Positions 601-24,105 of a stretch of 64,000 bases of DNA are shown piece by piece; the stretch's first letter is position 1; every line of letters begins with the position of its first letter. The stretch spans positions 43,222-107,221 of the forward strand of contig NIVC01002324.1 of assembly GCA_002269645.1 (NCBI GenBank), written 5' to 3'. This DNA is from Macrostomum lignano (Eukaryota). Below the pieces are notes generated by a model. It had not been told where the DNA came from, did not search any database, and was given only the letters and a program-made list of their open reading frames with translations. The position numbers and the translations under genes were made by a program.

Positions 601-846
601 ATGAAGTGGCAGCTGGCCACTCTTCTGCTCGCCTGCGTCGCCGTGGCCGTCATGGCGTCGCCGTCGGCCGAGGCCGAGGACTCGGACCTGGCCGAGCTCG
701 CCCAGCTGCAGGAGGCCATGGAGAGCGATGAGGTCGAGCACCTGCAGGCTAAAGGCCGCTACAGGCGCTTCAAGCGCAAGCTGAAGCGCGCCTACAAGCG
801 CTATCTGAAGAGGCACGGATACCGGAGGCGCGTGATTTATGGCTGA
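601..846 (+). CDS. Secreted pre-pro cationic peptide 1 (81 aa; K/R-rich amphipathic C-terminal peptide; AMP-like precursor)
   Basis: ORF MKWQLATLLLACVAVAVMA (signal) - SPSAEAEDSDLAELAQLQEAMESDEVEHLQAK (acidic pro) - GRYRRFKRKLKRAYKRYLKRHGYRRRVIYG*. TATAAA at 500-505, GC-rich coding-like codons, N-terminus homologous to the 3282-3581 and 14053-14370 genes. Confidence 0.9.
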   Translation: MKWQLATLLLACVAVAVMASPSAEAEDSDLAELAQLQEAMESDEVEHLQAKGRYRRFKRKLKRAYKRYLKRHGYRRRVIYG

Positions 847-1493
847 TTGTGGCCGCCACTGGACTGTCCGCAACGGAACTGATTGTACTGAGTAATACTA
901 TATGCTCTCCACAGTATGTAGTACTTTGTAGAATTATCGATACAAGTATTGCATTTGCAAAATTATCAATACCGAAAAGAGCATGTTTCACCATCGCATG
1001 AGCTTGTCGTGTCAATGCAGCTGATTTATACAAAAAGAATGGAAATACACGAGCGTACACTTACTTTGCTATTCCTACTCTTATTTTAAGTACAGGTAAC
1101 TCGTACGGGCTACTCTCAGCAGTTCTTGTTTTTATTTATTGAATTTGAAGATGGCTTGCACACCGAGAAGGCGAATTCCGTGTCCTAGATTGGATGATCT
1201 GGCATGCTAAATCAGAGATTGTGCAAAGACTCGACTGTTCTCTTTGATCAAGAGTTCGAATTGATTTTTAGTATGTTTGTATTCAATCGTTCAGAGTCCC
1301 TCTGAAATATGATAAACACTTTTACTATAGCTTTTGCAGCCCATTAGGGCCTACGTGCAATAAATTTAATTTAATGTACCAGTAAGACACGGTTGGTAAA
1401 GTAATGGAGCTTTTGTCTAAAGCTGTGCAATGTTGCTTGAATAAAATTAATATCGTAGGCGTAGGAACGTTTCAAATAGTGGGGGGCCAGGTT

Positions 1494-1545
1494 CAGTGGC
1501 GGATTTAGGGGGGGGGGAGGGCGCACGCCCCCCATCGAGTTGTAT
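1494..1545 (+). mobile_element. Possible end of a hAT-like MITE (CAGTGGCGGATTTAGGGGGG)
   Basis: Resembles a common non-autonomous DNA transposon terminus; the partner end was not found. Confidence 0.3.
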
Positions 1546-1601
1546 TTTTTTGGGAAATGCACATTATCATGTACAGATTCTTTTCAGAATCGGTGTTGTC
1601 A

Positions 1602-2147
1602 GCACTCATTTTAGCGCCGCAGGCACTCATTTTAGCGCCACAAGCATTCATTTTAGCGCCGCAGGCACTCATTTTAGCGCCGCATGCAGTCATTTTAGCG
1701 CCACAAGCACTCATTAGCGCCGCATGCAGTCATTTTAGCGCCGCTAGCGCTGCAGGCAGTCATTTTAGCGCCGCAGGCACTCATTTTAGCGCCGCATGCA
1801 GTCATTTTAGCGCCTCAGGCACTCATTAGCGCCGCATGCAGTCATTTTAGCGCCGCAGGCAGTCATTTTAGCGCTGCAGGCAGTCATTTTAGCGCCGCAG
1901 GCACTCATTAGCGCCGCATGCAGTCATTTTAGCGCTGCAGGCAGTCATTTTAGCGCCGCAGGCACTCATTTTAGCGCCGCATGCAGTCATTTTAGCGCCT
2001 CAGGCACTCATTAGCGCCGCATGCAGTCATTTTAGCGCCGCAGGCAGTCATTTTAGCGCTGCAGGCAGTCATTTTAGCGCCGCAGGCACTCATTTTAGCG
2101 CCGCATGCAGTCATTTTAGCGCCTCAGGCACTCATTAGCGCTGCAGG
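1602..2147. repeat. ~21-bp minisatellite (GCACTCATTTTAGCGCCGCAG and variants)
   Basis: About 25 tandem copies seen directly. Confidence 0.95.
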
Positions 2148-3281
2148 CGATATGTGAAAGAATTCTGCAGTCTCTCAAGAATAACAGCTTTTCTGTTAGG
2201 TTCAAGAACTGTTTATTTGAGTCTGAACCCCCACCCCATTGTGAGCCTGGCACTGGAAGGACCGACTCTTCATTGCCGCTGTCTCAAGGCTAGGTCGCAT
2301 TGAGCATGCAGACTACCTGAGGGGCTGAGTATTCTCTTAACCAGCTCACCCAAATTTGGCTTGAGTTCTTGGGGCTCTGTTTTGTAGGTAAGCGAAAGCT
2401 CCCAGATTTCGGATTTATAGATTCGACGAGGTGGAGCTAGTGGATTTTTGGCTTTCTCTTTAAATATCGAATTCTTCAACGATCATGCATAACTTTTTTT
2501 GATGAAAAAATCGTATTATGACTAGTGGGGTCAAATATTCGAAAAAACATGTTTTTAACGCTTTCACGCTTAACGCTCCGTTTGAATTTAATTGTTCAGT
2601 TCAATCATTTAGGTCTCTCCTTGGCCAATGTACAGTGTATAAGAATGTACATTCACAATAGCTAAGGCGTTTTATGACTCGCAATTTGTGGGGTTGATTG
2701 AGTTTTATCGTTTACCAGTCTGATAGACGATCGATGAAATAGAGGGGGTTATAAAGCTGCTGGCCTGAAATGCGATGTGTTTGCGGACGAAACAAGCCTT
2801 TTTTCACAATCCCCATCTTGCTCTGCTCTGCCCATTTGCCACTGCTCTGATTTTGTTTGTGTTATTTTAGAACACAGAGGGTGGCGCAGTTGCAGATGGG
2901 GGCAGTTGCTAATGGGTTCAATTACTTCAGACTTACTTGGCAAATTTGGAAAATAGTGCGCTAGTCACAATATACTAAATAGTTTCCTAAAAGTGGGAGA
3001 GATGCTGAAGTCTGTTACCCTGCTGCTAAATATTTATTTTAACTAAAAGTTGAAAAAGTTAAAAAAACAATGCTTAATAATTACGAGCTAGCTTGCAAAC
3101 TGCGAACGATGAAATTCCAAGTGTATTTTCTGCCTGGCAGATTCTCAAAGTTCACGATGTTCAACAATCACTTGAGCTGATATTATATAGTAAATTTTTT
3201 TGTTTATTAAGTGTACATTATCAGTAAAGAAAGATTAGTTATATTGTCCAAGGCGATAATTCAGAAGACGGTCCGGTTCGT

Positions 3282-3581
3282 TTAGCCATAGATGTGGTAG
3301 TGCCCGCGGAAGAAGCGCCGCCTGCGGAAGAAGCGCCGCCTGCTGAAGTAGCGCCTGCGGAAGTAGCGCCTGCGGAAGTAGCGACGCCTGCCGAACCGAA
3401 TCCTAAACTTCTCTTCCGGATCCGCGTCCTCGTCGGATTCGGCCAGATCGGGCTCGGCCATGTCGGCCAGGGCGGAGGCCACCTTTTCGAAGTCTTCGTC
3501 GTCTTCTTTGTGCTCAGCCGGGCTGGCGTAGACCGCCAGCGCCACGCACAGGAGGAGACCGAGGGCGAACTGCCACTTCAT
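3282..3581 (-). CDS. Secreted pre-pro cationic peptide 2 (99 aa; RRRYF/RRRFF-repeat C-terminal peptide)
   Basis: Likely start at MKWQFALGLLLCVALAVYA (3581), acidic pro ending PEEK, then FRIRFGRRRYFRRRYFRRRYFSRRRFFRRRRFFRGHYHIYG*. TATAAA on minus strand at 3669-3674; AATAAA on minus strand at 3203-3208. Confidence 0.9.
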   Translation of the reverse strand: MKWQFALGLLLCVALAVYASPAEHKEDDEDFEKVASALADMAEPDLAESDEDADPEEKFRIRFGRRRYFRRRYFRRRYFSRRRFFRRRRFFRGHYHIYG

Positions 3582-3668: not shown

Positions 3669-3704
3669 TTTATAGACCCGCAATCTGGGGCGGGGACACG
3701 TTTT
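3669..3704 (-). promoter_or_regulatory. TATA box plus AAAACGTG motif of peptide gene 2
   Basis: TATAAA at 3669-3674 and AAAACGTG at 3697-3704 (22 nt spacer); same arrangement in gene 4. Confidence 0.65.
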
Positions 3705-4714
3705 TGCTTACCTGCAAAACAGAAGCCCCAAAAAACGTGCTCTCAAGACTCGATAGGGGGTTGAAATTTGAATGCTTTTGCCTCATGGTCCAAATTGCAT
3801 TCAAAGAAAGAACGAAAGATGCATGCAGTAGCTGCCATTTTAATTTCAGCAACCACATATCTGATATTCATTCTCTCACGGCCCCTTTCTCAACTCAATA
3901 CTACCTAGCCTTGAGGCAGCAGTAATTAAAAGCGGCTCTTCAGTGTCAGACTCACAATAGGTGGCCTCAAGAACAGCATAAGCAAGTCTTGGGCAGTTGA
4001 GCTTGAGAGTTGAAGCTGTTATTGTCTGGAAAACTACCGAACTCTACCTACGAGTCTTGTGAGTTCGCTCACACACTTGCAGACTTGCGTCGCATGGAAG
4101 CTTTTTCGGTCCCAGCATATTTTGGCCCATAAATTTTCTGTCAGGTTGACAGAGATCCCGGGACTTTAAAGCTGATTTGTGTCTATCTTCCAAGGGAATT
4201 TGTTCATCGTCAATTCAGCGAACCCAAAGGTTGCTTGATGGTATCGGCACGGGCTGTTCTGCCAGTCGTCCTGCACACCGCAGCGCTGTTGCTGGGGCTA
4301 TTGATGTCAGTGATGCATTTGCGACAAAACACTGGCATTATTGGCATATTTAGCATAAGCAGTACCCTCAGGAGTTTGCAGCCTAAACTTATGCAGCTTT
4401 GAAAAGTCAGAGATTACTTCATGCTGCCACACCTTCACAGACTAAATATCTTGACTACAAAAGACTGTATCATCATCAGATTCGTATTACATTCAGTGGT
4501 GTAGCAGTTTGAACAACCCACACTCGGCAGTTCAAAATTACCTTCAATGGTTCACCAAAAATTTAGCAATGGTTCACCAGCAGTTCAGCAATGGCTCACC
4601 AACAATTTGGCCACGGTTCACCAACAGTTTAGAAGCGGTTTATCAGAAGTTTAGCAATGGCTCACCAGCTATGGTTTACCAGCACTGTTTCTCACAATCC
4701 CTGAGCAGATGGCC

Positions 4715-4990
4715 ACAAATCTATGGCCATACCGGCTATGGCTACCTCACCAGACACTGCTTCCTCCGAGGCGACCTCGAAAGTGAACTTTGCCGTTTTT
4801 TGCGAGTGTGACAATGAAGATGCTCAGCACTTTGTCTGTCACTGCCCTTTCTTTACCAGAGACCGGCAACGCTACCTCGGGCCAAACCCGTCTATTGACG
4901 AGGTCTGCCAGCCCGACAGAATCTCACGGCTCATCCAGTTCCTCCGGGCGACGAGACGAGCCACTTTCTTCCCTACGGAAGATCAAAGCT
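4715..4990 (+). mobile_element. 3'-end remnant of a non-LTR retrotransposon (I/Nimb/Loa-like C-terminal CCHC region)
   Basis: TGYGYLTRHCFLRGDLESELCRF, then after a frameshift CECDNEDAQHFVCHCPFFTRDRQ...LIQFLRATRR. Matches the TGH..L..HL...G....C..C...E...H....CP zinc-knuckle typical of these LINE ORF2 C-termini. Confidence 0.7.
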
Positions 4991-5112
4991 GCAGGAAGGA
5001 CCGGCGGACCACCCTGACCGGCCCCACGCCTCTGCCTGTCTGCGGGCCTTCGGGGGCTGGCGGAATGGGCGACCCTCGCCTCCCCGCTGTGTCTACGGAC
5101 CACCATGCAGCT

Positions 5113-5413
5113 AAGTAAAGTAAGTCAAAGGGCCAGATGTACAAACGACAGCTCAGCCGCAGCTATTGCGCGGCGCATCTGAAGGCTGCGTACGGCTGTT
5201 CAGTCCAAGGACTGGGATTAATTACTAATACTGGCACCCATTTTACAGCTGGGTGAACTGAAGCAATGGAGAGTTAAGTGTCTTGCTCAAGGACACTAAC
5301 AAGGAAGTTTTCCTAGTGGTTTTTGGACACTAATTGTTCCAGCTAGATCAGGAATCGAACCCCTGACCTTCAAGTCGTGATTCCGACGCTCTAAGTACTA
5401 GGTTACAACTCCC
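5113..5413 (-). mobile_element. tRNA-derived CORE-type SINE
   Basis: Minus strand: tRNA-like head with B box GGTTCGATTCC (5351-5361), central GTGTCCTTGAGCAAGACACTTAAC...CAGCTGTAAAATGGG resembling the MIR/CORE domain, and a short CTTA/CTTTA tail near 5113. Confidence 0.8.
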
Positions 5414-6012
5414 TTGCTATTGAGATACACGTCAAAAGATTCATACTCAACCCAACAGATGACATTTTAGCATTGTTATGCATATAGTTACGTCTGTACT
5501 GGTAATATACGTTGTTTTTTATTTCAAAAAGCATTGTTAGTCGTTTCAGTCGGTCCTAAAGTAGTTGATTTATAATACAACTTGTATTCGTCTTATAATC
5601 TCCTGAGTTATTATAGGGATACCCCTGCGTTAAATTAAGTGGGTTGGTTATGCACGAAAACGAAACTTTACTTGGCTGTAGTTTTGTTGAATTTATTTTA
5701 GTTGGTATGAGTAGGTGGTTTCTATTATCAGTTAATGAATTCAAACAATGCATAAACACTCTTTTATAGATCTGATCAATATTCACCAGCCATCTGAGAG
5801 TCTGCATGGACGAAGCAAATAATTAAACCTGGCCGAAAAAGGAAGACCTTGAGAGATGCTGAGCACTGGGGGGTCTTTCTCGAAAGCAACTTACGATCGA
5901 CCATAGACGTAAGTTGGGTAAGCTACACTTACGGGTTGCTCGAAGGGCTCGCAAGTTAGCTATGCGTAAGATTGATCGCAACTTTACGAGTTCGTAACTT
6001 TGTGCAAAAGAC

Positions 6013-6383
6013 TCATGGATGAATGAATAGAATGGATTGCTATTCTGGCTCTGGCTATTTTCGTTTTTGACTCTTTTGCATCCGGTTCCCCCCGTGCCTT
6101 TTCATTGGTTGATGATTGCCATAGACAATTTTCGGCCTTCGCCCCTTTCTTTCCTTTTTATTGTAGACGAATCGACTCTCGAATCGTGCTTGTAGGTCTT
6201 CCCCCTTTATTTCAAAACACGAGCGAAAGCGCTTGTGCATCGAAAGAAAGGGGCGAAGGCCGAAAATTGTCTATGGCAATCATCAACCAATGAAAAGGCA
6301 CGGGGGGGAACCGGATGCAAAAGAGTCAAAAACGAAAATAGCCAGAGCCAGAATAGCAATCCATTCTATTCATTCATCCATGA
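6013..6383. repeat. Long near-perfect inverted repeat (~141-bp arms, 88-nt loop)
   Basis: 6013-6153 is the reverse complement of 6242-6383, with one indel in a C/G run. Confidence 0.9.
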
Positions 6384-6564
6384 AAAGACTGTTTCTCGAA
6401 ACGTTCGTATGTCTATGGTCTTTCGTAAGGTTGATCTTAACCCTACGACTGCTCGGTATCAGTCGTAAGACGCACTAATCGCATAGTACGTGAAGCTTTA
6501 GTCAAGCCAAGTCAAGTTAAACTTTATCGAAGGTGGGTCTTTCTCGAAAGCAACTTACGATAGA

Positions 6565-6607
6565 CCAAGGAGTTCTATAATTAGCAACTAATTATAGAAC
6601 TCCTTGG
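6565..6607. repeat. Perfect 20-bp hairpin with 3-nt loop
   Basis: CCAAGGAGTTCTATAATTAG-CAA-CTAATTATAGAACTCCTTGG. Confidence 0.9.
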
Positions 6608-8139
6608 ATAGACTAAGTAAAGATATTTGCAGATTTATGACCATAGACATGCAACTTTTCGTTTCAGATACGACTTACGAACAGCGTAAGCCACGCAAAG
6701 TCTAAGTGAGTTTTGAGAAAGCGTCTTACGAGCAAACTTACTGTGACGTTGTCAGTTTAAGGTGGTCCCGAAAAGGGCCGTTGGACTGCTGGTTTTCCAT
6801 AGTCATTCAACCCTTCAGTTTCACCGCTTCAACTAAACTTTTCCATTCGTTTATTGCGACGTTTACTTGTAGTAGTGCCCAACGATTTTGTGGCAATTTA
6901 TAATTCATTGTATATTTTGCTATCCTCTCTCGCCACCGTATAAAATTGGCACGATCGATAATTTTAAGTTCTCTCGCCAGCCAATGAAATCACTCGTGTT
7001 CGCGCTACCCCCTCTGCGCTCTTTTATTAAACCCCCCCGCCTGGCGGCGGGCACTCCACGCGCCCCTTGCTCTCTCTCGCTCCTCTCTCTCCGCTTGCTC
7101 CTTGTTTCCTTCCCTGCGGCCTCTTAGCTGTCTTATCTGTTTGTCTGGCTGCCTCGAGCCTCCTTATTTCTCACCACGGCCCTTCTGTCTGGGCCAGCCT
7201 GCTCACACACTTACTTGACTGTTTCACGCCACGACCGACGCCAACTCACCACTACGTTTCACTGCATTCACTGTGATCATAGCCACTGCTCACGTCACGT
7301 CGCCATTGTGTCATTCGCCTGCCACTTGACTTCATATCCAAATTATATTCAACCCATTGCTGCAGCCGCCAGTGCCCAGAAAGCTATAGTCTGTTTATTG
7401 CCAGTAACAACCAAACTTAATACTGATATTAACAATAAAGACAACTACGGCAGTTCCTGCCTTTATCGCCAAGTGCTCCGCTACAAAATCCGCTTTACAA
7501 GAATTGACTTCAACTTATTTTGGGACTAAAACGGCCCTTTTAAGGGTCACCGCATAGCTGGCCGCTACGCCAATAACGTGACACTTACGCTACACGCAAA
7601 TTTCTTTCTTACGATCTAACTTACCATAGAACTTACGTGAGTTTCGAGAAACACCCCCTGTTTGATAATATTGAAAAATATTACTTTCGAACTTTCAAAC
7701 TGGATGAACCGTTTTGCGTGAACACAGTTGTCTATGGTATGATCTAAATTTAGCTCCCATTAAGAAAGCATTTGTGGACGAAAGGTTTTGCAGTTTGGAC
7801 GAATTCAATCGCAAAAAAGTATATTAGGCGCTCTGTATTGTGAGTTTGAAGTGGTCGGGCCGAGGGCCAGGGTCACAAGCTGCTTGGCATTGAAACTGTA
7901 ACTTGTCTGGAAAATTACTGGAATTTTTTATTCTTTTTAGACGCACGCAGGTCTCTCTTTCTATTGTTTTCACTGCATTTTTTTCTAAGCCTCATACCAA
8001 GAAAACGACCCTGCCTGTCCGTCTTAAACTCAAGTTTAGATTGCATTGGCATGCTCTTCTATACATAGTTTCATTGTGCTAAAGGAGGGATCGGAAAAAA
8101 TTGTTACCTTAAGAGCCAAACAACCTAGCGCATGCCTTG

Positions 8140-8370
8140 CGAGCAAAGGAAGGGAGAGGAGAGGTAATTGAAGATAGAAGAAACGTAGGAGAAAGAAGAG
8201 GTGAGGGAATGCAGGAGAATAAAGGAGACGAGGGGAGAGGAGGGATGAAATAGGAAAGGAGAGAGGGAGAGGTAGAGGAGAGAGGGGGGAGAAGAGAGAA
8301 GAGAGGAGAAGAGAGAAGAAGAAGGAGGATAAGAGAGAGAGGAGACAAGGCAGAGAGCTGAGAAGAGAGA
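8140..8370. repeat. Purine-rich (GA) low-complexity tract
   Basis: Directly visible. Confidence 0.8.
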
Positions 8371-9924
8371 CATGTGGCTCTCGGGCTGAAGTTTGCCGAC
8401 GCCTGCGCTACGTTTCAGCCCTCTGCATCCTATCTAACGAGTGTCCCAAAAGAGGGTAATGCTGTCTGCGTTAACTGCGAGCGAGCAGTTTTGCGTATAC
8501 CGCTGTAAATTGACAGTTTTACACTGAATATGTGCAATTGTTTTACTCCAACGATTTTGTGCCGAAAAAAATATCCAGTTTGTGCCAATCGTTGCCTTAG
8601 AGCAGTCATAGGTAACTTTTGAATGCTACAAAAAGTACTTTATTTTTAAGAAAACGAAAAGACGAACAGTGAAACTGAAAATGAACATAAAACAGCAATT
8701 CCGAGGCTACATGCACATGTCACGTACATGCATGATACTTGTTAAAAACTCCGCGACATGTCACTAAGCTATACGTGCCTCAGATGATGCTCATAGATTC
8801 CAATGCACTCTCGTCCTGTCGAAACCAACCAAAAGCTCCCACAGCGGCTGAGTCATAGATCTTATATTCCCTAGATAGGCCATTTTGTATTGTGGCAATA
8901 GGAAATGCGACCGTTGTCACTGGTGCGAAAAAGCTGACATGGGTTGCTTAAATTTTTAGTTCAGTAGCTTAGGGACACAGACACTATTTTTTGAGAAGTT
9001 GATAGAACTTCTTATTAAGTAAGAGTAGATATGTATAAGATATTCTATCGGTTTGAGGTCGGTATGAGATTAAATCCCGAGAGTTGCAACTGGCATATAT
9101 TTTCTCCAAAACTGGATGAAAATGTCATTCTGCACCATTTTCCAAAGTTTGATACCGCCTCTCAGTATTGGATCGACGCATTGAGATCAGAGGCTATAAC
9201 CTCGGACGTCGTCAGGCAACACAAACTGCAGCTATGAAGCCTACAATTTGAAAGACGCCTACCCCCAATTTTGACGTCAATTTGCGGTTGCGTTGACGTA
9301 GCAAAAATTACCTAACTGACTAACGATTTCGTTGGTAAATTTGTTTTTGCCACAGAAGCGTGGGGCACCGTTTTGCTTGCGGCAACGCCCCATTTAGTTG
9401 CTGCACGCTTTTTTTGTAAAAAAACAACGAAATCGTTTGGCAATGCAACTCAAGCCTCACTGCAGAATTTTAGTGATGAAGCGTTTCTATTTACTGTTCC
9501 AATGTGGCTCAGAGCGGTTCGTGGAAAAACACTGGTTTTTTCCTTTTCTGCCATGCAGGCACAAGAGATGGTTATAGAGCGGAGAGGGGTTGGGTGACTG
9601 GCTTGTTATATTGTTTGATATGAATATTTCGTGGCATTGGACTGATGGTCCGAACTTGAGATAGACGAACTTGCTTTCAAGTTATTAAATTTTACAGTTT
9701 TTTTACTTACTACGATCTTGTGTTTTACCCACTTTATAAGTCATAGTCATAATCAATCAAAGCGACCGATAAATATCCAGTATGTTTTATGAGCTACCAA
9801 AGTATGCTCGCATGCTAGAACTATGATTCTTTCAATCTAAAAATCATTATATACTAAATCTCTATATTTACTAAAGTCTTAATGTTTTTTTAATGCAAAA
9901 TAGGCATGTAAATCAATCTATGAA

Positions 9925-10290
9925 ACAACCATGGAATCTATCGAATCAATCTATGGAACAATCATGGAATCTATCGAATCAATCTATGGAACAATCATGG
10001 AATCTATCGAATCAATCTATAGAACAATCATGGAATCTATTGAATCAATCTATAGAACAATCATGGAATCTATCGAATCAATCTATGGAACAATCATGGA
10101 ATCTATCGAATCAATCTATAGAACAATCATGGAATCTATTGAATCAATCTATGGAACAATCATGGAATCTATCGAATCAATCTATGGAACAATCATGGAA
10201 TCTATCGAATCAATCTATGGAACAATCATGGAATCTATCGAATCAATCTATGGAACAATCATGGAATCTATTGAATCAATCTATGGAAAA
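9925..10290. repeat. 33-bp minisatellite (ATGGAATCTATCGAATCAATCTATGGAACAATC), ~11 copies
   Basis: Tandem copies visible; gives the repetitive MESIESIYGTI ORF. Confidence 0.95.
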
Positions 10291-10452
10291 ACGAGGCTTG
10301 CCCGCCCGTCACCAAAAGATTAGTCTCCTCCATTTCAGACTTACTTAGCTTGCTCTGCTTCAAACAATTTGGATGGTTATTTGTTCCATTTTAAACCCAC
10401 AAACGACAAAAGCAAGAACGACTGCCAGACACTTTCGGTAGCTAATATTCAA

Positions 10453-10632
10453 CTAGAACTGCGAGCGCCGGCGGAAGTAGCGATGCTTGCGGAACCGGAA
10501 CCGAATCCGGAACTTCTCTTGCAGATCCGTGTTCTCGTCGGACTCGGCCAACTCGGACTCGGCCAGGTCGGGCTCGGCCGCGTCCGGCTCGGCCAGGTCG
10601 GCCAGGGTGTTGGACAACTTTTCGAGGTCTTC
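10453..10632 (-). pseudogene. Pseudogene A of the cationic peptide family (gene-2-like; signal peptide and promoter deleted, C-terminus truncated)
   Basis: EDLEKLSNTLADLAEPDAAEPDLAESELAESDENTDLQEKFRIRFRFRKHRYFRRRSQF* aligns to the gene 2 pro and mature regions. At 10633 it joins sequence homologous to gene 2 upstream 3721-3750 (agccccaaaa.acgtgc.ctc), implying a deletion of ~220 nt. Confidence 0.8.
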
Positions 10633-10699
10633 AGACAGCCCCAAAAGACGTGCCCTCGACCTAGTTTCGGGAATTTCGGGTTAATGAAAAACCGGTTTC

Positions 10700-12924: not shown

Positions 12925-12925
12925 A

Positions 12926-12969
<44 letters not shown>

Positions 12970-12970
12970 A

Positions 12971-13007
<37 letters not shown>

Positions 13008-13008
13008 C

Positions 13009-13075
<67 letters not shown>

Positions 13076-13086
13076 AGTAGTAGTAG
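12768..13086. repeat. (AGT)n microsatellite
   Basis: About 106 units visible. Confidence 0.98.
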
Positions 13087-14052: not shown

Positions 14053-14370
14053 TTAACCGTGGTAAGCGACGATGTGGACGTGGTGGCGACGGTGATAGCG
14101 CCTGCGGTAATAGCGCCGGTAAAAGCGCCTGCGGTAATAGCGCCTGCGGCTGTGGTACACAAAATAGTGGCGACGCCTACGACGACGGAAGAACAACTTC
14201 TCCTCGGGAGCCAGGTCGCTGTCCGATTCGGCCAACTCCGGCTCAGCCATGTCGGCCAGGGCATCGTTGGAAGCCTCGTCCAGGTTGTCGTCGTCGACTT
14301 GCTCAGCCGGGCTGGCGTAGACCGCCAGCGCCACGCACAGGAGGAGACCAAGGGCGAACTGCCACTTCAT
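14053..14370 (-). CDS. Secreted pre-pro cationic peptide 4 (105 aa; Arg/Tyr/His-rich C-terminal peptide)
   Basis: MKWQFALGLLLCVALAVYA signal (same protein sequence as gene 2), acidic pro ending PEEK, then LFFRRRRRRHYFVYHSRRRYYRRRFYRRYYRRRYHRRHHVHIVAYHG*. TATAAA on minus strand at 14464-14469; AATAAA on minus strand at 14012-14017. Confidence 0.9.
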   Translation of the reverse strand: MKWQFALGLLLCVALAVYASPAEQVDDDNLDEASNDALADMAEPELAESDSDLAPEEKLFFRRRRRRHYFVYHSRRRYYRRRFYRRYYRRRYHRRHHVHIVAYHG

Positions 14371-14463
14371 TGCTGCTGCTGCTTTAGAAATCAAAGACAA
14401 CAAACTCGGTTCGCAAAGATGCTACCCGACTTGGGAGCTCCTGGGCGCTTCACACAAGCCTTA

Positions 14464-14535
14464 TTTATAGACCCACTTTGATGGGGACGGTCACGTTTTC
14501 GCTTTATTATTGCCAGCTGGACCCCTTAACACGTG
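14464..14535 (-). promoter_or_regulatory. TATA box, AAAACGTG motif and CACGTG E-box of peptide gene 4
   Basis: TATAAA at 14464-14469, AAAACGTG at 14492-14499, CACGTG at 14530-14535. Confidence 0.65.
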
Positions 14536-16059
14536 AAACGTGAAGATTTAGTTTTTTTGAGCACACGCGTCTGCAGCTGACACGCCCTATGGGCGCAGAC
14601 ACACCCGTGCAGCGAGCTGACAGAAATTTCTGGAAAAGCAGTGGCAGCATCGAACACTACTCGAGCACGCAGCAATTGCTTGAAGCTTTTCTGCTCCATC
14701 TCAGTATCTCAATTCTCTTGATAAATAATAAGAAAGGCACACAATGCTGAGAATAATGGAGATTGCAATCAAGCCTTGCCCTCACTTCTATTTCTCTCTG
14801 TTTGGGTAAGACAGCAAAAACGTTTTGCTACTGCATCATTTTCCTGTCTCTCTCCACTCATTTCTGATTTTCTGTTCGCACCCAACTCGGTGAGTTTGCA
14901 CAAACTAGGACACCTGCTGCAGAAAACTTTGATGCTGCCAGTTTCTTACGGTTTAACAAACAGATTGGCCCAAGTAAACATTAAAATGTTATTGAAAAGT
15001 CAGTGAAGAACTCAACAAGGACTGCCAGACTAAGATGAGTGCTGCTCCAAGAATTTGTGTCTTTGTGACAAAATGCTTGATTGAGAACCTTTCGGTGCAT
15101 TGCACTGCACTTCATACATATGCATGTAACTGCATTAACTTACTTAGGCCTGAGACTATTAGAATAATTGGTCGTCCATGCGTAAGACCTGAAAACTCTT
15201 CTGAGCAGTCGAAGCCAGTCGAAGCTATTCGAACGCACCCTTTATCTGCTGATACTGAAAACAACACTTACTGATAAAGGAGCAGCTAACGAGTCAGTTA
15301 TTCCTTGAATCCATTTTTAAGCTCTTCTTTTTACATATACTGCAGTTCGCATTCATTTGACGATAAGTCAGTCAGACTTCGCAGTCGGAATTCGATCATT
15401 GTGTGTTCAAATCGATCATTGTATTGCACAATCTGCCATCGACAGAGGGTGATTAGCAGAGATGGGGCATTGCACTCTTGTTGAATTCCGGATGTGACCA
15501 TAGGTGCTAACCAAGAGCTCCGATACCCATGCTCCTTAAATGATTCGTTGCAAACGCTTTGAGAATCAGTTTAGTCTTGTAACGAATCTGCTATTCGAAT
15601 GATTGAATTGGTCGCTCATGTGCCATGGCTCTCCGCCATACCGTATACTTGCTAAGCGCAAGTCTTGTAGACTCTCAAGATTAAAATTTCTTATCTGGTA
15701 TAGCTTTTTTTACCTATGGTCGCGAATCTTTTAATCAATCTCGCAAACTCTCTATCTGCAATCGAAGAGTGACCACATGTTCGGTTTATAATCTTTGAGT
15801 TCACCAGATATTCTGTACCTCTACAATGTAGAAATCAAACAGTGAGACACCGTATTCGTTCGGTTGCTCAAGCATTGGATAACACCGACGCTTTGAATTA
15901 AGCCTCCTGAGCAATTCAGATAATCAACCCACTCCATTAACTTGAGTTAGGAGTTTACAGCATCGCGATTTTTTGTCTCACTGTTTACTGAGACAAAAAT
16001 GTGTTGAAGATTATTTTAGGGTCCAGTTAGAAAATAAAAAGTGACGCTTAACACACTAC

Positions 16060-16740
16060 TTAAAGTACGAATAAAAACATGACAACAATTGGGTTAACTT
16101 CTTTGAGAATTTTTTTTGAAAATAAAAGTCTAAACCACAAAATACACGCGCTAACGCGCACTCGTGGTCTAGGCATTGTTACACTTGCAAGCCGTACACT
16201 CTCTCCATTGGCTACCTTCAAAACCATAGGCTCGATCTGCATGTAGCTTGTGCCATTGCCAGTGGGTTCGGTCCGTGGATGAATAAAACCATGGATTTCT
16301 CGAGGCCCCCGTTCGCACCGATTGGCTACTGTAGATTCCATTGCTGTAAATTCGGTGCAAGTTGCAGTTCTGATTCATACTTAAAAGACAAAACGACTGA
16401 CTACAAGTAGTAAAAGAAGCTGAACTTTAAACCATTGAGATGGCGTGTCATTATTTGCATATCCAGTCAAGGATGAACAAAGGCTGACTATTTGTCTTGA
16501 CATCGTTAAAACAGATCGAGTATTCACACCGACATGAATCAAGTACCAGTGTGAGCTCCATTTCAAGAACGAAGACTTTCCTACTTTGGCACAGGGAGGC
16601 CATGCAAGCTCCTGGTAAGAGTAGAAAAAGATTGAGACGTACGAATGTCTCGATCATCCAGTCCTGCAACGCTTTGCTGCTGAAGGCCCAGAATTGTACT
16701 GCATTCCTTGTCTTAATTGTACTTTTTCAATAATTTTCTA
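16060..16740 (-). mobile_element. Possible decayed LTR-retrotransposon gag/protease-like remnant
   Basis: Weak motif resemblance only: VAGLDDRDIRT (gag-like) and LKVANGESV (retropepsin flap-like) in broken frames. Confidence 0.25.
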
Positions 16741-17939
16741 AACCTGCAGCTTCAATTACCTTAGTGCGTCCAAAAAGTTCTCAGACACCCCTCATATCTC
16801 TGCATCTGTTTGATTGAGTTTGATGAAAAAATGCAGAAACATAGACCAATATGTAATGAATTCAGTGCTAAAGTTTCAGCTTAATCAGGTTGACAGAACA
16901 AAAGCAATCCATCATTTACTGAGGAGCCTACGAAATTAGCAATAAGATTTTTGAAGAGAATCGAATCTGGACTCCAGTGGTGACATTGTAATTATACTTT
17001 TACCCAGACGCAATGAAAAAATATTTTGGCCATTATTCCACAGTTTTGATGTGTAGCATAGACATTTGGATTGAAAAAATCCATCGCTCAGTATTTTGTT
17101 AATAAATACAGAACAACAAGAAGTAAATGAACAAAAAGGAAAAATCATTAAAACTAAAGTACCAGCTACACGAAAAGAGTTAATAATAAATGTCACAGCT
17201 AGTGCAGTTTATCAGTTTGTAGTCGAAATTTGACAATGTAAAAATCAATTTGTCACCCAAGTGAAACATGCAGTTCTCAAAGCCGCAGTTTCCAAAGATG
17301 CTCGACACTTAGCCTGATGATTTGGCACTGCAAAAGGAGTTGGTCTATTTTGAATGTTTTCTATGAAAGAGAAATACAGGTGCTCAAGTATAGTTGCCGA
17401 ACTTACCATTTGAAAGATGCACGTCTTGGTTAAATTGGCATGCGACTGATGAGCTTCGTCTGATGAGCTTCTTTGGTGAGCTTCTTTGGTCCACAAAAGT
17501 GTGGAATAATGGCCGCAAAAGTGTAGAATAATGATAGATTGTCTACCTCCAAAACCATATACACAAACACATTGTCTCATGAATGTATTTTTAGAAGCCT
17601 AAAATAATGATTCCTAAGCGTGGAATAATGAGCGTACAGCATGACACAATGACTGGGCGCTGAGAGAAAGTTTATAATTTTTATAAAAATGAGCTGCAAT
17701 GAGCTACGCGCACTCGAGTTTTGGCCATTATTCAACTCAGTTGCATACTATACAATCTACCATTGCAGCTCATTTTTATAAAAATTATTCAGAAAAATAT
17801 CACTGCTTTCGCTGGGTATTGAAAAATACCTTAATTAATTGAATACTAATACAAGCTGTGAAGGTTTAGCCATAGATTAAAGAGCAAAAAAACAAAGCAG
17901 TAAGCAGCATAGCAACATAGCCAGAGTGCGCAGAGATTC

Positions 17940-18245
17940 AGATGCTGAGACGCGGAACCAGCCTCAGGTGGTTTAAGAGCAAAAGAATCGCCAATACGAA
18001 GTCTGCTTGCAACAAAGGGCGGCAGTTTCAGGTCTGGGAGACGAGTTCAAGAGCTGATTCAGCACGCAGAATGAGTCCAAGAGGACAGCGGTTCGTCAAG
18101 CTGCAAACTGAGCTGCAAACTGCTGCTGAGGGGCTGATCAGAGCGACACCTAGGGATATGTGGTCGGCGTGGATTGAGGACTGAGGAGTTGCCGATGTGA
18201 TATGACAAGTGCATTCGACAGAATGAAGATTCTTCTGAAGAATTT
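17940..18245 (+). mobile_element. Tc1/mariner transposase C-terminal remnant
   Basis: RGQRF...ELQTAAEGLIRATPRDMWSAWIED, then a shifted YDKCIRQNEDSSEE, matching the mariner C-terminal RW.KCI..NG.Y.E pattern. A mariner-like end (GTGCGTCCAAAAAGTTC) lies at ~16764. Confidence 0.55.
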
Positions 18246-18982
18246 CACGATTGGTGATCTGTTTTTTGTTTGAACTGTTTGCTCGGTAACTTTTACATTT
18301 TATTGAGTTTAAAATCGTATTGCTAATTTCGTAGGTTCGTCAGTAAAAGATCGATTGCTTTTGCTCTGTCAACCCGATTAAGCTGAAACTTAAGCACTGA
18401 ATTCATTACATATAGGTCCATGTTTGTGTAAATTTTTATAAAAATCAATTGAACAGATGCATAGATAGGAGGGGTGTCTAAGTTTCATATGTCTGTCTGT
18501 CTGTCTGTCAGTCCTGCATGTTCCTGCATCTGTTTCTCCTGGAGAAGAAATCTTTCAATGCATTTATATTACTTTATTTTGAGCATCAGTAATATTGATG
18601 CTACGGCACGTTTTCTTTTTTTTATTCTTTGCGATATAACAGGGCTTTGCACATATTAGAATGATTGAGTTTGAAAGTTCATTTATTAGGAAATTAAGAA
18701 AACCTCTGGCTTTAATAGTATTAACTCTTGTCTCGAAATTACATTAGCCTCTCAGATACGCATTTGAAATACGCGCGAAAAATATGAAAACTAGTGTAAT
18801 GGCTGAAACAATTTTATAGGACTTAGAAATCTAATTCCTTGCAAAAATTTCGCTTCGATCGGAACGACTGAGTCCATTTCACCAGCTCGTATTCGTCTGA
18901 AATGTGGAGGTGTTTGAGTACGGTGTTGTTATCTCGAAAGCCGCTTTAATTGCATTCACTGTAAAATTGGTGGCACTTCTTC

Positions 18983-19640
18983 AGTCTAACAGGTGACATA
19001 ATTCTAGTCTAACAGGTGACAATCCTAGTCTAACAGGTGACATAATTCTAGTCTAACAGGTGACATAATTCTAGTCTAACAGGTGACAATCCTAGTCTAA
19101 CAGGTGACATAATTCTAGTCTAACAGGTGACATAATTCTAGTCTAACAGGTGACATAATCCTAGTCTAACAGGTGACATAATCCTAGTCTAACAGGTGAC
19201 ATAATCCTAGTCTAACAGGTGACACAATTCTAGTCTAACAGGTGACACAATCCTAGTCTAACAGGTGACACAATTCTAGTCTAACAGGTGACACAATCCT
19301 AGTCTAACAGGTGACACAATCCTAGTCTAACAGGTGACACAATTCTAGTCTAACAGGTGACACAATCCTAGTCTAACAGGTGACACAATTCTAGTCTAAC
19401 AGGTGACATAATTCTAGTCTAACAGGTGACATAATCCTAGTCTAACAGGTGACAATCCTAGTCTAACAGGTGACATAATTCTAGTCTAACATGTGACATA
19501 ATCCTAGTCTAACATGTGACATAATCCTAGTCTAACAGGTGACATAATCCCAGTCTAACAGGTGGCATAACCCCAGTCTAACATGTGACATAATCCTAGT
19601 CTAACAGGTGACATAATCCTATTCTAACAGGTGGCATAAC
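18983..19640. repeat. 21-23-bp minisatellite (CTAGTCTAACAGGTGACATAAT[T/C])
   Basis: About 29 tandem copies. Confidence 0.95.
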
Positions 19641-20200
19641 CCACTAGCACTCCTGGCTACCAGGACCACATTGTAATGAACTGATGACTCACACAGGACT
19701 CTAGTGCGGACCACGTGACTGATGCACTCAACAATGCCGCCCAGGTCGCCCAGCCTGAACCATCTGGCCTGGGTTCGCAGCCATGCGGGCATCTGCCGGT
19801 GCTGCTGTCTCTGCTGCTCCGCTTCAAATGCCAGCCACACCAGCTGACAGGAGGGCCGATTCTCCAGGAGCTCGGCCAGCACCGACTGCTCCCCGGCTGA
19901 AACCGGCCGATCTGTCTGCAGGAACAGGCAGTGACAGGACTCATCAGCTGTCAGCTGATCGATTGACTTGGCTCGAACTCGATACCAGCTCTTGGTCACA
20001 CCGTAGTCGCATTTCAACTTTTTCACCACCCGATGCAGCACCGAGGAGGCTGAGGCTGCAGCGGATTCCGCCCCGACTCCGGCTGTCAAAAGAAGAACTT
20101 CAACGGGATCGCTGGCGCGAATATTTGAACTGCTGTACAGCTGACCCATGAATAACTGCTGTGTGCGGTGTTTTGAGTGTTGCAGGCTTGCACAGGCCAA
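19619..20200 (-). CDS. Hypothetical protein or exon (up to 193 aa), alternating alpha/beta pattern
   Basis: GC-rich non-repetitive ORF with coding-like codon usage. Its 3' end runs into a minisatellite, probably an intron (candidate donor GTGGGT near 19643). No family recognised with certainty. Confidence 0.55.
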   Translation of the reverse strand: MACASLQHSKHRTQQLFMGQLYSSSNIRASDPVEVLLLTAGVGAESAAASASSVLHRVVKKLKCDYGVTKSWYRVRAKSIDQLTADESCHCLFLQTDRPVSAGEQSVLAELLENRPSCQLVWLAFEAEQQRQQHRQMPAWLRTQARWFRLGDLGGIVECISHVVRTRVLCESSVHYNVVLVARSASGLCHLLE

Positions 20201-20754
20201 TTCTATTGTTAGTTATAGTCACCCGAGTGGCAAAATTGGCTCTCTATTTATACTTGTACTCGTGTCTGTATTTTCACCTTCTTACTCATCTCCACCTCAA
20301 CACATTGAAACCTCTGCTCCAAGCTATTGTGCGTTGTACGTTGAAGATATTTCGTTAAATAAGCATTAAAAGCAATTTCTTACCTCCTTGAGTTTGGGAC
20401 TTAAAAAAATATATATTTAAAAAGTTTTAATGAATAAAACCAAGGACTCATCAGGCGGATAAGTAGTGCGGATGAATTTTTGTATGCAATGAATTTCGCA
20501 GTCCACGTCACTCACGCCACACCAGCATCAGTGATGCCTGCAGTAGCGAGACTGACGAATCTCTGCACCCTGCTGACTCGTGTCCAAGATCCAGAATCAC
20601 ACAGTCCTTGATCGAAGTCTTGATTAGAAACCCTTATTAACTTGAGCAGTTCCCTAGCTCTCGGTCAGATAGGGCGCGGCAGTGCATTCCCCCCCCCCTG
20701 GGCCCATGTTTTTGGGCCAACCACCTTCCGCAAACCGTCTGCATCAACCCCCAT

Positions 20755-21103
20755 CGCCTAGCTGCCTTCAACCGCCCCCATTCTTTCTGCCCCATTTATC
20801 ACACCCAAGCCTGATTGGTTGCCCATGTCTGCTCCACCCCTCCGCCTAGCTGCCTCCAACCGCCCCATTCTTTCTGCCCTATTTATCACACCCAAGCCTG
20901 ATTGGCTGCCCATGTCTGCTCCACCCCTCCGCCTAGCTGCCTCCAACCGCCCCCATTCTTTCTGCCCCATTTATCACACCCAAGCCTGATTGGCTGCCCA
21001 TGTCTGCTCCACCCCTCCGCCTAGCTGCCTCCAACCGCCCATGCTTTCTGCCCCATTTATCACACCCAAGCCTGATTGGCTGCCCATGTCTGCTCCACCC
21101 CTA
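20755..21103. repeat. ~87-bp tandem repeat, ~4 copies
   Basis: Directly visible. Confidence 0.9.
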
Positions 21104-22104
21104 TTTTTCGGGTTTCCTAATCCTACCCATTGATAAGTATCACAGCCAATCATTACCTAAGCCCTGACCTAAAGACTAAATTATACATACGCTCGTAATT
21201 ATAAATGAAACAAAAAATGAATTTTGAAAGCGATACACCGATAACTTAAGAATAACTTCTAGGATGAAGTACACTGTAAATTGTATCAGCCATTGACGCT
21301 TGAAGTTATATGCGCGCTGTCCCTCGTTCTACTTAGATCAAGTCAAGTAAAAGTAATATAATTAGGTTCGCGTTCGATCACGGAAGGACGATCTGGCCGA
21401 AGCTACAAAATAAATTACCGAAACTGCCACATTGCTACATTTAAAAATCCTGTAATCGCAAGTTTTTTTGCATACCTAATTGGACAGATAAAAAAATCTC
21501 TAAACTCCTTGAAGATATCCTTGAAGCTCGATTGAATCCGCTTTGTAATGACAGTGCTACTATGTGCGGTACATCCGTTTTCTGATCACACCTGTTGTCC
21601 TGATACTATTTAAAAATATTAGCCCTGCATTCGTAATAAGAGCTACAATTTAATTTAATTCTAGTTCAGGCGTCTTGAATGGTACTATATATAGAAGCTG
21701 TGAGAACGTATTAAAAGTTTCAACGCACTAAATCAAACTTTTTTGCAGTTCTGTCTGCCCCCTGACAAGACCGACACTTTACTGGTGTTTTTCGCAAATG
21801 CTAAAATTAGCTCGTAGCAATAGCAAGTAGAAATTAAAGAAATTGGATGTGCATGCTTTGCATGACAGAGAGTTGCTGGAATGAAATTAAAACAAATAAT
21901 TCTGACCGGAATGCCGTTGAATATCCTGACGCCATTTGAATCCTTGAATGCTTGAAAACTTGAACTAGCGAATGACTAGGCGCTTTACCTTTAAATTTGA
22001 AGTTTTAATCACATAATCCATTTTGCGGTAAATGAGAATAGGGAGCAGTGATCCCGCTTGGAAATTTTATAGAGATCCGTATAGATCCGAGCATATCATT
22101 CAGA

Positions 22105-22370
22105 TTCCTGACGTACAGATCCATGATTTACAGATCCGTGACGTACAGATCCATGATTTACAGATCCGTGACGTACAGATCCATGATTTACAGATCCGTG
22201 ACGTACAGATCCATGATTTACAGATCCGTGACGTACAGATCCGTGACGCGCAGATTTCTGACGTACAGATCCATGATTTACAGATCCGTGACGTACAGAT
22301 CCGTGATTTACAGATCCGGGACGTACAGATCCGTGATTTACAGATATTTGGTGTACAGATCTATGACATC
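22105..22370. repeat. 30-bp (2x15) minisatellite GACGTACAGATCCATGATTTACAGATCCGT
   Basis: Directly visible. Confidence 0.9.
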
Positions 22371-22624
22371 AAGTAAATCTAGTTACCAACACTCAAAACA
22401 CCCATAGCTGGGTTATAACCACTGGACGTCACAAAATCGCCATTTTTAATTGACGCTTGTTCCAGGAAATCACTCCTAGGATTGCTGTCGCCAAAATAAG
22501 CGCTCTTAATTTCAATTCGGCTCGATATTGTTGTGCAGCTAGGTCTCACGAATTCCAAACGAAGTCAAGTACATGTTTTACTGAGGTGCACTCGTAAGTT
22601 TGTCAAGGACAACAACAACAACAA

Positions 22625-22890
22625 CAGGGCACACCGCCGGGGAAACGGAGTAAAGTTCTCAAGAGGGCGGTGTCAGATATCAGTTTTTTCAGCGCGAGCT
22701 CTCTGAGAAGGTGGCAACAGCCGGTGGCGTCCCAGCTGAGGCAGTATAGTCGAAACCTTTTTGACCGACAACGCCGAAAGGTGGACGCAGCACACTCGGC
22801 CCTGCAGTGAGCAGTTTTCAGCATCAGCTACCCGGAGCCGTCTCCAACGCAGCCCTCTACAAGCGCGCAGGACTGCGACCACCTAGCGGG
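22625..22890 (+). mobile_element. Degenerate RTE-clade LINE fragment
   Basis: Broken frames give VDAAHSAL...AVFSISYPE.VSNAALYKRAGLRP, the region just upstream of the RRL.LAGH motif in RTE ORF2. Homologous to 25780-26200. Confidence 0.65.
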
Positions 22891-23658
22891 TCCACCGCCT
22901 TAGAATACAGTTGTGTTCACTACACAGATTTGCTTTTTGTTCATAGTGCGTTAAAAGGGATTTCAGCATGGACATATTCGATACAGAATTCGGCCGAGGA
23001 AAGACACTACAGGGACAGGAACAGCCAAAATTTTACAGGAACTTCGATTGCTTTCTTGCCGGTCTCTGGGAGAATTTCATGCAATACTAGACTTGATAAA
23101 CTTGTGTGTGCAACTCGGATAAAACGCTACATTTTGCAGCGATTTGCACGCATTTAGACTACTTTTAAGTAGTCCACCGAGTTCACAGTGAGCCTTAACA
23201 TGCAGTTAATCGCATCTTGGCTTAGAACGAACTCAACTTCAAACGACGAGTTTTTTGGAAATTTGTAGATAAGCAGGGAGCTCTTTAATATTGAACTGTA
23301 AACTTACAGTTTCGATACGCAGTCTATTTATTTCAGATGTTAAAAGACAGAAATATTTGAAATATTTGTTAGTACTTGTAAACTGGTAAAGATCGCCTTG
23401 AGCGTCTTGCTTAACTTGAAATCTGAGATCCGTGAGTAAAAATGGATTGAGCAATTGGAGCTGGTTGAAAGAAAGAGAATTACACGTGTTAAGCGGTCAA
23501 TATAGTTGTCTAGTTAGAAAGATAGACAGTTCAATGGAAAATTTGTGGTGGGTAAAGCTGATAACAAAATCAATATGCTAAGTAATTAGTCAGAGTTCAT
23601 CAAGATGTTAAGTAGAGTTTCTTTCTGTGTTGATTTCTTCGGGCCGTTAATCCAATTT

Positions 23659-24105
23659 TTAGCCATAGTACCTGCGCCTGTAGTACCTGCGCCTGTAGTA
23701 CCTACGCCTGTAGTACCTCCGCCTGTAGTAGCGCCTGGACCTGTAGTATCTGCGCCTGTAGTAGCGCCTGTAGCGCCTGTAGTGGCGCCTATAGTAGCGC
23801 CTGGCCCTGTAGTATCTGCGCCTGTAGTAGCGCCTGTAGTAGCGCCTGAGAGCTCGCCTGTAGCGCCTGTAGTAGCGCCGTCTCCGGAATCGGTACTTCT
23901 GCTCGACAGGGCTCACCTCACTTGATTCAGACTCGAGAGCGTCGCTGCTGGGCGACTCCAGCTCCATCAGGGCGTTTTCGAGGGCTTCGGGCTCGTCGGA
24001 CTCGGCCTCGACATCCGCAGGCTTCGCCGGCTGCTCCTCGGCAGCCACGCAGAAGACCGCCAGGCCGAGCACCAGAAGGCTCAGGCACAGCAGCTGCAGC
24101 TTCAT
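23659..24105 (-). CDS. Secreted pre-pro cationic peptide 5 (148 aa; 78-aa RRRYY-repeat C-terminal peptide)
   Basis: MKLQLLCLSLLVLGLAVFCVAA signal, acidic pro ending VEQK, then a 78-aa region with 43 R and 28 Y (manual count) ending RRRYYG*. TATAAG on minus strand at 24197-24202; AAAACGTG at 24223-24230. Confidence 0.9.
   Translation of the reverse strand: MKLQLLCLSLLVLGLAVFCVAAEEQPAKPADVEAESDEPEALENALMELESPSSDALESESSEVSPVEQKYRFRRRRYYRRYRRALRRYYRRYYRRRYYRARRYYRRHYRRYRRYYRRRYYRSRRYYRRRYYRRRYYRRRYYRRRYYG

Follow-up and report, generated by a model that had tools for sequence, protein, structure and literature searches.

A free-living flatworm, Macrostomum lignano, carries a tandem cluster of four small genes (g1, g2, g4 and g5) whose products switch from acidic to basic sequence at a single lysine and end in glycine. 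The cluster lies in a 64,000-nucleotide (nt) stretch of contig NIVC01002324.1, hereafter the window, and raises the question of how such precursors might be opened, given that the basic parts are themselves rich in adjacent basic residues, and what the released peptides might do. On the evidence presented below, the cluster is best read as belonging to a Macrostomum-restricted multigene family of small, putatively secreted prepropeptides, in which lysine marks the presumed site of cleavage, arginine makes up most of the charge of the presumed mature peptide and a terminal glycine probably serves as an amidation signal.

Four intact genes share one layout

The four genes are intronless, as seen by direct translation and in a six-frame list of open reading frames (ORFs), and each has its own promoter. 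All four are called genes in assembly GCA_002269645.1, with g5 being called on two contigs. A preliminary description, made from the letters of the window, had placed the acidic-to-basic switch directly after LQAK in g1, PEEK in g2 and g4, VEQK in g5 and LQEK in a broken copy, pseudogene A; residues and coordinates were verified in every case. Upstream of the switch, the net charge of the pro-region ranges from −10 to −15 in the window members (after the assumed signal-peptide cut), and downstream of it the C-terminal parts, henceforth the cargos, reach +15 to +43. These parts contain 8, 11, 13 and 24 adjacent basic pairs in g1, g2, g4 and g5, respectively. Two sister contigs (L004 and L006), either allelic or homeologous, bear the same cluster. 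Within the window, tblastn found no further family member besides the four genes, pseudogene A and its 5′ stump; the 9.4 kb preceding the window yielded none either.

The genes also share a promoter layout. A (T/C)ATAAA box stands ~90-100 nt before the ATG, with an A(A/C)ACGTG box another 20-30 nt upstream (AAGCGTG in the case of g1), and this two-box arrangement of ACGTG and TATA elements is common to the window genes and to every other family locus that we read (L001, L007, L010, L011 and L012). The pattern ACGTG-N(8-35)-YATAAR has four matches in the 64-kb window, three of which are the promoters of g2, g4 and g5. The fourth, at 37297-37322 on the forward strand, is not followed by a family-like ORF and was for this reason taken to be a chance match.

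A Macrostomum-restricted family with a conserved prepro part and variable cargos

Relatives were sought by word-indexed searches and, among 1.84 billion representative proteins, with a profile of the aligned signal peptide and propiece (the prepro part). The matches consisted of M. lignano ‘hypothetical proteins’ and one 929-bp Logan contig only. Reading four further loci revealed unannotated copies, arranged in tandem clusters of two to five genes behind the same promoter. The family set analysed here comprises 32 distinct forms from at least eight loci, with duplicates removed and the boundary placed by alignment. The predicted layout is the same throughout: a signal peptide (MKWQ, a hydrophobic core and A-x-A; the N-terminal MK(W/L)Q, core and A-x-A were recognised by inspection), an acidic propiece with a charge of −10 to −16, and a cationic C-terminal peptide.

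While the prepro part is 34-76% identical among paralogs, the cargo ranges from 3 to 77 residues in length and differs in kind. Some forms carry short alternating sequences (FVRVRVRL, IFRVRVRI, WLRVRARVRI, GFHVHFH), others a Pro/Arg repeat (P0016), a Trp/Arg-rich stretch (P0002, P0015), a helix-like segment (P0007) or the Arg/aromatic repeats of the window. A comparison of g4 with its sister copy on L006 gives the same picture at close range: the 174 nt of the prepro part differ by two synonymous changes, leaving the protein identical, whereas the cargo shows three replacements and a 15-nt in-frame deletion of five codons. P0001, the annotated product, corresponds to g4 minus 27 nt of repeat; the deposited model of the g4 copy on L004 (10001-10318) drops 27 nt of the Arg/Tyr repeat as an intron, giving 96 instead of 105 amino acids (aa). 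This removal is probably an artefact of annotation or transcript assembly in a repetitive coding sequence.

For 16 members, Pfam returned no relevant match at E-values up to 1, the frog skin active peptide family PF03032 included, and a sequence search of the PDB gave no match below E = 0.47. Neither the peptide strings nor the gene identifiers of the family were found in the literature, and nothing on the family was found in the literature on Macrostomum antimicrobial peptides, neuropeptides or rhabdites. Six apparently bacterial proteins of 100-130 aa from metagenome and Logan contigs (P0003-P0006, P0008 and P0009) were considered as relatives and rejected; they resemble the family in composition and do not share its prepro region, and we therefore treat them as convergent. 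By eye, these proteins have a twin-arginine-like signal, an Ala/Glu-rich spacer and a C-terminal tail of the (RRRYY/RRRYW) type.

Some individual loci deserve mention. On L007, the P0007 core gene is present twice in inverted orientation, at 9964-10206 (−) and 14312-14554 (+), with a difference of 1 nt, and the annotated 127-aa P0007 model fuses unrelated upstream sequence to the second copy. L011 holds five members in 16 kb (4110-20203), one of which (19985-20203) continues past its glycine into ...VGSRRRSRSG. The deposited label for the family genes is ‘hypothetical protein’; several models are partial and some have spurious N-terminal extensions.

The boundary lysine is invariant, its acidic context is not

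Lysine occupies position P1 of the boundary in all 32 forms, and arginine in none. Both AAA and AAG codons are used, and the residue is among the very few invariant columns in otherwise diverged paralogs. The boundary lysine is more than chance. The preliminary description had read the two preceding residues as part of the signal, proposing an [E/Q]-[E/Q/A]-K code and, as a check, the alignment of more paralogs. Across the 32 forms the lysine withstood this check and its proposed context did not: [E/Q]-[E/Q/A] precedes the lysine in eight forms, five of which are copies at the window locus, and elsewhere in 3 of 27. The code thus fails in 24 forms, including the nearest paralogs with their PELK and PAEK junctions and every KK-type member, with KK, KKK or RKK junctions being present in 20 of the 32. 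Moreover, the dipeptide class occurs at ~8% of positions in the Glu/Ala-rich propieces, and a looser rule that asks for a Glu anywhere among three residues, of the kind known from the spider Processing Quadruplet Motif (PQM), is satisfied at 56% of them. Having been drawn post hoc on five related sequences, the class adds little information beyond the lysine itself.

At the other end of the precursors, 29 of the 32 forms terminate in Gly, Gly-Lys or Gly-Lys-Arg (G, GK or GKR before the stop), and all four window genes in Gly. The preliminary claim that every intact member ends in glycine holds for the four ORFs of the window and not for the family at large, since P0007, P0016 and P0041 end in AVL, SKK and FRK and hence lack an amidation signal. 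Among window ORFs of at least 50 aa, 10 of 130 end in Gly, a count that includes the four family genes. The glycine is kept among paralogs that encode it by either GGC or GGT and that terminate with TGA, TAA or TAG. This terminal glycine, too, is more than chance. Some paralogs carry the canonical signal of Gly followed by basic residues (GK or GKR), which lends independent support to the view that the glycine marks the peptides for amidation.

Lysine and arginine are partitioned between junction and cargo

A stronger signature than the proposed code is the way in which the two basic residues are divided over the precursors. Positions P4-P1 of the junctions contain 62 Lys and 2 Arg over the family, the mature cores 13 Lys and 203 Arg; 29 of the 32 cores are free of Lys. 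Such a partition would be expected of precursors whose releasing endoprotease recognises Lys and disregards Arg, in the spirit of the earlier suggestion that a protease other than a standard dibasic convertase opens the precursor.

Convertase sites are described by a basic residue at P1 plus another at P2, P4, P6 or P8, i.e., with 0-6 residues in between (PMC6832493). In the window genes P2, P4, P6 and P8 hold no basic residue, so that their junctions fall outside this rule. The KK junction, in contrast, is itself a classical convertase-type site. A Lys-directed enzyme would fit the partition; given the dibasic KK of most paralogs, a dibasic convertase is a candidate as well. Junction type also goes along with cargo composition. 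Internal dibasic pairs occur in all eight monobasic-Lys forms that have three or more basic residues, as opposed to 3 of 12 KK/KKK forms (Fisher p = 0.0014, with kinship of the forms ignored; the forms being related, the counts overstate independence). In P0016, 12 basic residues are placed without a single adjacent pair. Stepwise removal of the propiece by a dipeptidyl peptidase, as in melittin, was rejected by inspection, as Pro/Ala does not stand at every second propiece position.

A proposed host-defence-like role and its alternatives

We favour the view that the family encodes secreted cationic effector peptides, freed at Lys, amidated at Gly and host-defence-like in nature, and put its probability at roughly 0.55. 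What suggests host defence is the combination of a conserved prepro part with a hypervariable cationic cargo in a lineage-restricted, tandemly expanding family under one type of promoter, a design known from peptide families of the host-defence or venom type. In the proposed sequence of events, signal peptidase would take off ~19-22 residues, and the acidic propiece would escort and mask the cationic part in transit. An endoprotease with Lys at P1 would then cut at the acid/base boundary, i.e., after a single K in the window cluster and at KK, KKK or RKK in most paralogs. Peptidylglycine alpha-hydroxylating monooxygenase and lyase would finally turn the terminal glycine into a C-terminal amide, once a carboxypeptidase has trimmed the basic residues where the end is GK or GKR. 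The predicted products of the cluster are Arg/aromatic-rich amidated polycations of 29, 40, 46 and 77 residues with net charges of +15 to +43, which may be antimicrobial or else bind polyanions or membranes. Spider linear peptides are an established case both of acidic propieces that neutralise cationic lytic peptides and of amidation directed by Gly (PMC6832493). The antimicrobial or polyanion-binding role is the least certain step. The pointers to host defence—cationic charge, acidic propiece, hypervariable cargo and beta-amphipathic short paralogs—are indirect. Among them, the amphipathicity of short cargos such as FVRVRVRL is strong, with a hydrophobic moment (muH) of ~1.3-1.45 at 180 degrees and z ~2.4-2.8 at 170 degrees.

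Several observations weigh against this view. The window cargos are amphipathic neither as helix nor as strand (z < 1 for g2, g4 and g5; 1.7 for g1), and a classical membrane-lytic mechanism is consequently not indicated for the window peptides. Ratios of nonsynonymous to synonymous substitution rates (dN/dS), compared between prepro and mature parts over all pairs, gave no clear positive selection; we set this result aside because low-complexity cargos are not reliably alignable and dS is saturated. The AlphaFold2 model of g4, a single long helix from the junction onwards, was uninformative (predicted local distance difference test, pLDDT, 70; predicted template modelling score, pTM, 0.31). 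The idea that a monobasic Lys cut leaves the mature peptide intact breaks down in g1, whose presumed mature peptide contains five Lys and four KR pairs and would be spared neither by a Lys-specific nor by a dibasic enzyme, and internal Lys is found in the cores of P0007 and P0011 as well. The RR and RRRR runs of g2, g4 and g5 correspond to textbook sites of convertases and furin-type enzymes and might be cut. No expression site was found, as supplements of M. lignano transcriptome papers gave no match to nine family gene identifiers, though identifiers may differ between annotation versions. Finally, cleavage position, amidation and secretion have all been deduced from sequence.

The same genes might instead encode precursors of neuropeptides or peptide hormones, akin to the planarian ‘secreted peptide prohormones’, with classical convertase, carboxypeptidase and amidating enzymes acting at all basic pairs. 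In that case the RR-rich domains encoded in the window would fall into very short fragments, the last one alone being amidated, and FVRVRVRL-NH2, GFHVHFH-NH2 and ARI-NH2 would be signalling molecules. Indeed, signal sequence, basic cleavage sites and a length below 200 aa, by which planarian prohormones were recognised, are all found in the window precursors of 81-148 aa, and short amidated products would resemble the flatworm peptide AVRLMRLamide (PMC2953531). KK, KKK and RKK junctions together with GK and GKR ends are classical marks of the regulated pathway, the KK-type cargos avoid internal dibasic pairs as a dibasic convertase predicts, and an intronless gene for a rhodopsin-family G-protein-coupled receptor (GPCR) lies 2.7 kb from g5, a closeness that may be coincidence. 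What leads us to consider prohormones unlikely is the pattern of conservation: neuropeptide families keep the peptide and let the spacer drift, whereas here the prepro part is kept and the cargo is hypervariable. Dozens of paralogs in tandem clusters and the absence of repeated peptide-Gly-basic units speak in the same direction, as does the fact that P1 is never Arg, which is atypical for convertase sites; and cleavage at the RR pairs would break g5 down largely into Tyr-Tyr dipeptides. Structural or packaging polycations are another option, to which we also assign a low probability. A block polyampholyte, with an acidic half followed by a basic half, would be suited to self-coacervation, and the Arg/Tyr blocks, whether or not still joined to the acidic one, might condense with polyanions or with each other in secretory granules or in secreted material such as a rhabdite or mucus matrix, an adhesive, an eggshell or a seminal secretion, with Tyr as a possible cross-linking or cation-pi partner. 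The non-amphipathic, low-complexity Arg/aromatic repeats of g2, g4 and g5, expanded by tandem duplication to as much as +43, would suit such a role, and planarian rhabdites are built on sulphated glycosaminoglycans, i.e., on polyanions (PMC5450325). It fits these three genes better than the short paralogs, whose cargos of 6-10 residues come with the same prepro part and promoter and cannot be structural. The conserved junction Lys and the terminal amidation signal are, moreover, marks of processed free peptides, and no expression link to any gland was found in the transcriptome supplements.

The preliminary description had further drawn a parallel to the spider PQM, and the junction could in principle be a Lys variant of that motif, read by a homologous Glu-dependent protease. 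Glu lies within P2-P4 in four of the five window junctions, and spider linear peptides show the same overall order: a signal, an acidic propiece, a cut at a single basic residue, a cationic peptide and amidation at Gly (PMC6832493). However, Arg at −1, which defines the spider motif (PMC6832493), gives way to Lys in 32 of 32 forms. Glu occurs within P2-P4 in only 8 of the 32 junctions, against 56% expected from composition alone, and g1, with its LQAK, is a window gene that has none there. Searches of Pfam and PDB revealed no sequence homology to a described family, and the PQM protease is itself uncharacterised, so that homology is not claimable. We therefore retain the parallel as an analogy and regard shared machinery as very improbable. 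That the ORFs arose by chance in GC-rich repetitive DNA and are not genes may be considered effectively refuted. The window is, to be sure, full of minisatellites, and antisense ORFs overlie each of the four genes; yet one and the same three-part design is seen in 32 forms spread over many loci. Conservation in the face of synonymous variation extends to the start codon, the signal peptide, the junction Lys, the terminal Gly and the promoter, and the genes are called in the annotated assembly.

A further proposal would be that Macrostomum possesses a dedicated Lys-directed processing route, in which Lys serves as cut mark only and Arg as functional cation only. We regard this as rather unlikely. 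Were it true, poly-Arg/aromatic peptides as long as 77 residues and with a charge of up to +43 could leave one cell type whole and amidated, and the route would spare peptides that the ordinary Arg-cutting convertase pathway would shred. The peptides would then form a new class of secreted polycations, polyanion-condensing or cell-penetrating, distinct from classical amphipathic antimicrobial peptides.

Pseudogene A and other features of the window

Pseudogene A is larger than first described, consisting of a 3′ piece that lacks start codon and signal peptide and a 5′ stump 1.6 kb upstream on the same strand (Table 1). Sister contig L004 has the identical broken layout, at 11965-12127 and 13731-13922, which argues that the disruption is older than the divergence of the two contigs. 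The DNA between the two pieces partly resembles sequence ~1.5 kb upstream of g4, and a 33-nt repeat array directly adjoins the pseudogene.

Minisatellites and microsatellites with periods of 3 to 88 nt are densely scattered between and around the genes. The two large satellites of the window lie on one strand, with a GC skew of ~0.69 over ~12 kb, and generate very long spurious ORFs.

Table 1 Gene cluster, promoters, pseudogene and further features of the window (positions in the window; CDS, coding sequence; UTR, untranslated region)
Feature	Position	Strand	Details
g1 promoter	480-506	+	AAAGCGTG at 480-487; TATAAAT at 500-506; ~100 nt 5′ of the ATG
g1 CDS	601-846	+	81 aa, intronless; predicted signal aa 1-19 (putative cut AVMA/SP), acidic propiece aa 20-51, cationic part aa 52-80; LQAK51 then G52; Lys51 codon AAA, 751-753; Gly81 codon GGC, 841-843; C-terminus IYG; stop TGA
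g2 CDS	3282-3581	−	99 aa; PEEK58 then F59; Lys58 codon 3408-3410; 40-aa Arg/Phe/Tyr-rich part; Gly99 codon 3285-3287; C-terminus IYG; stop TAA
g2 promoter	3669-3701	−	ACGTG ... TCTATAAA
Pseudogene A, 3′ piece	10453-10644	−	propiece remnant, LQEK then F, truncated basic part, SQF end
Pseudogene A, 5′ stump	12280-12442	−	promoter and 5′ UTR homology, codons 1-7 (MKWQFAL), then stop
g4 CDS	14053-14370	−	105 aa; PEEK58 then L59; Lys58 codon 14197-14199; 46-aa Arg/Tyr/His-rich part; Gly105 codon GGT, 14056-14058; C-terminus YHG; stop TAA
g4 promoter	14464-14496	−	ACGTG ... TCTATAAA
ORF between g4 and g5	19619-20200	−	193 aa; no Pfam match
g5 CDS	23659-24105	−	148 aa; VEQK70 then Y71; Lys70 codon 23896-23898; 77-aa (RRRYY)-type part; Gly148 codon 23662-23664; C-terminus YYG; stop TAA
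g5 cargo repeat	23671-23836		33-nt internal tandem repeat; cargo net charge +43
g5 promoter	24197-24227	−	ACGTG ... TCTATAAG
GPCR ORF	26837-27853	−	338 aa; PF00001, E = 3e-33
Maf1 C-terminal exon	32509-32985	−	PF09174
Satellite	38528-40373		30-nt unit, ~62 copies
Satellite	40855-50459		15-nt unit AGTCAGGGGAATTAG, ~640 copies
C2H2 zinc-finger exon	54262-54849	+	
Coding-like repeat	54973-55482		32/64/96-nt repeat between the zinc-finger exons
C2H2 zinc-finger exon	55387-56055	+	
Repeats (3-88 nt periods)	1602-2148, 9911-10288, 12768-13086, 18983-19639, 20755-21102, 22101-22366, 52919-53569, 59936-60528, 61615-62113, 62983-63811		

Significance and comparison with known systems

No description of antimicrobial peptides of free-living flatworms was found in the literature, and a 2023 survey of helminth antimicrobial peptides does not mention Macrostomum (PMC10414684). 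At least 32 forms under a common promoter would make the present family a candidate host-defence effector repertoire of a flatworm, in a species that serves as a flatworm model with established transgenesis (PMC5730564). The ~130-bp ACGTG-plus-TATA promoter could serve as a cell-type-specific driver, and the cargos, which span short (XR)n amides as well as (RRRYY)n polycations, are ready candidates for peptide chemistry. The clean separation of the two basic residues between cut site (Lys) and cargo (Arg) may be read as a sequence-level signature of protease specificity.

We found no description of the family itself, and the kind of system it represents is already known. In amphibian skin, precursors of the dermaseptin superfamily (PF03032) join a highly conserved signal and acidic propiece to cationic peptides that are hypervariable and often amidated at Gly, and they too make up a large multigene family. 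The frog junction is Lys-Arg, in contrast to K or KK in the flatworm, where the genes are intronless and show no Pfam match. The arminins of Hydra likewise form a lineage-restricted multigene family; behind the signal peptide, their precursors have an anionic N-terminal half, from which a strongly cationic C-terminal half is set free. They share no detectable homology with the flatworm family, their cargos are Lys/Arg-rich rather than built of Arg/Tyr repeats, and their processing site is not known to be defined by an invariant Lys. In alpha-defensins, cathelicidins and the helminth defence molecules of trematodes, an acidic or neutralising prosegment keeps the cationic effector inert until proteolysis. 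Folds and sequences of these are unrelated to the flatworm peptides, which are without Cys, and the systems rely on elastase, MMP7 or cathepsin L, mostly without amidation.

Closest by phylum are the planarian secreted peptide prohormones (spp, the planarin family) and flatworm neuropeptide precursors, small precursors of less than 200 aa with a signal, basic sites and amidated products, whose members are clustered and recently duplicated as in the Macrostomum family (PMC2953531). Unlike these, the Macrostomum family, which is known here from sequence alone and for which no homolog was found outside Macrostomum, keeps the prepro part and not the peptide, and its cargos have a much higher positive charge and in some forms great length. 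The precursors of spider linear peptides and neurotoxins with a PQM resemble it in having a signal, an acidic propeptide thought to neutralise the cargo, a monobasic cut near acidic residues, a cationic peptide and a terminal Gly that gives rise to an amide (PMC6832493). They differ in that P1 is Arg and not Lys, that Glu accompanies the cut in no more than 8 of the 32 flatworm junctions and that most flatworm paralogs have KK; the sequences are unrelated, the source is a free-living flatworm with no known venom gland, and (RRRYY)n cargos are unlike amphipathic helices. Against all of these systems, what appears unusual in the Macrostomum family is the pairing of a Lys-only junction with an Arg-only cargo, and the occurrence of (RRRYY)n polycations with a putative amidation signal.

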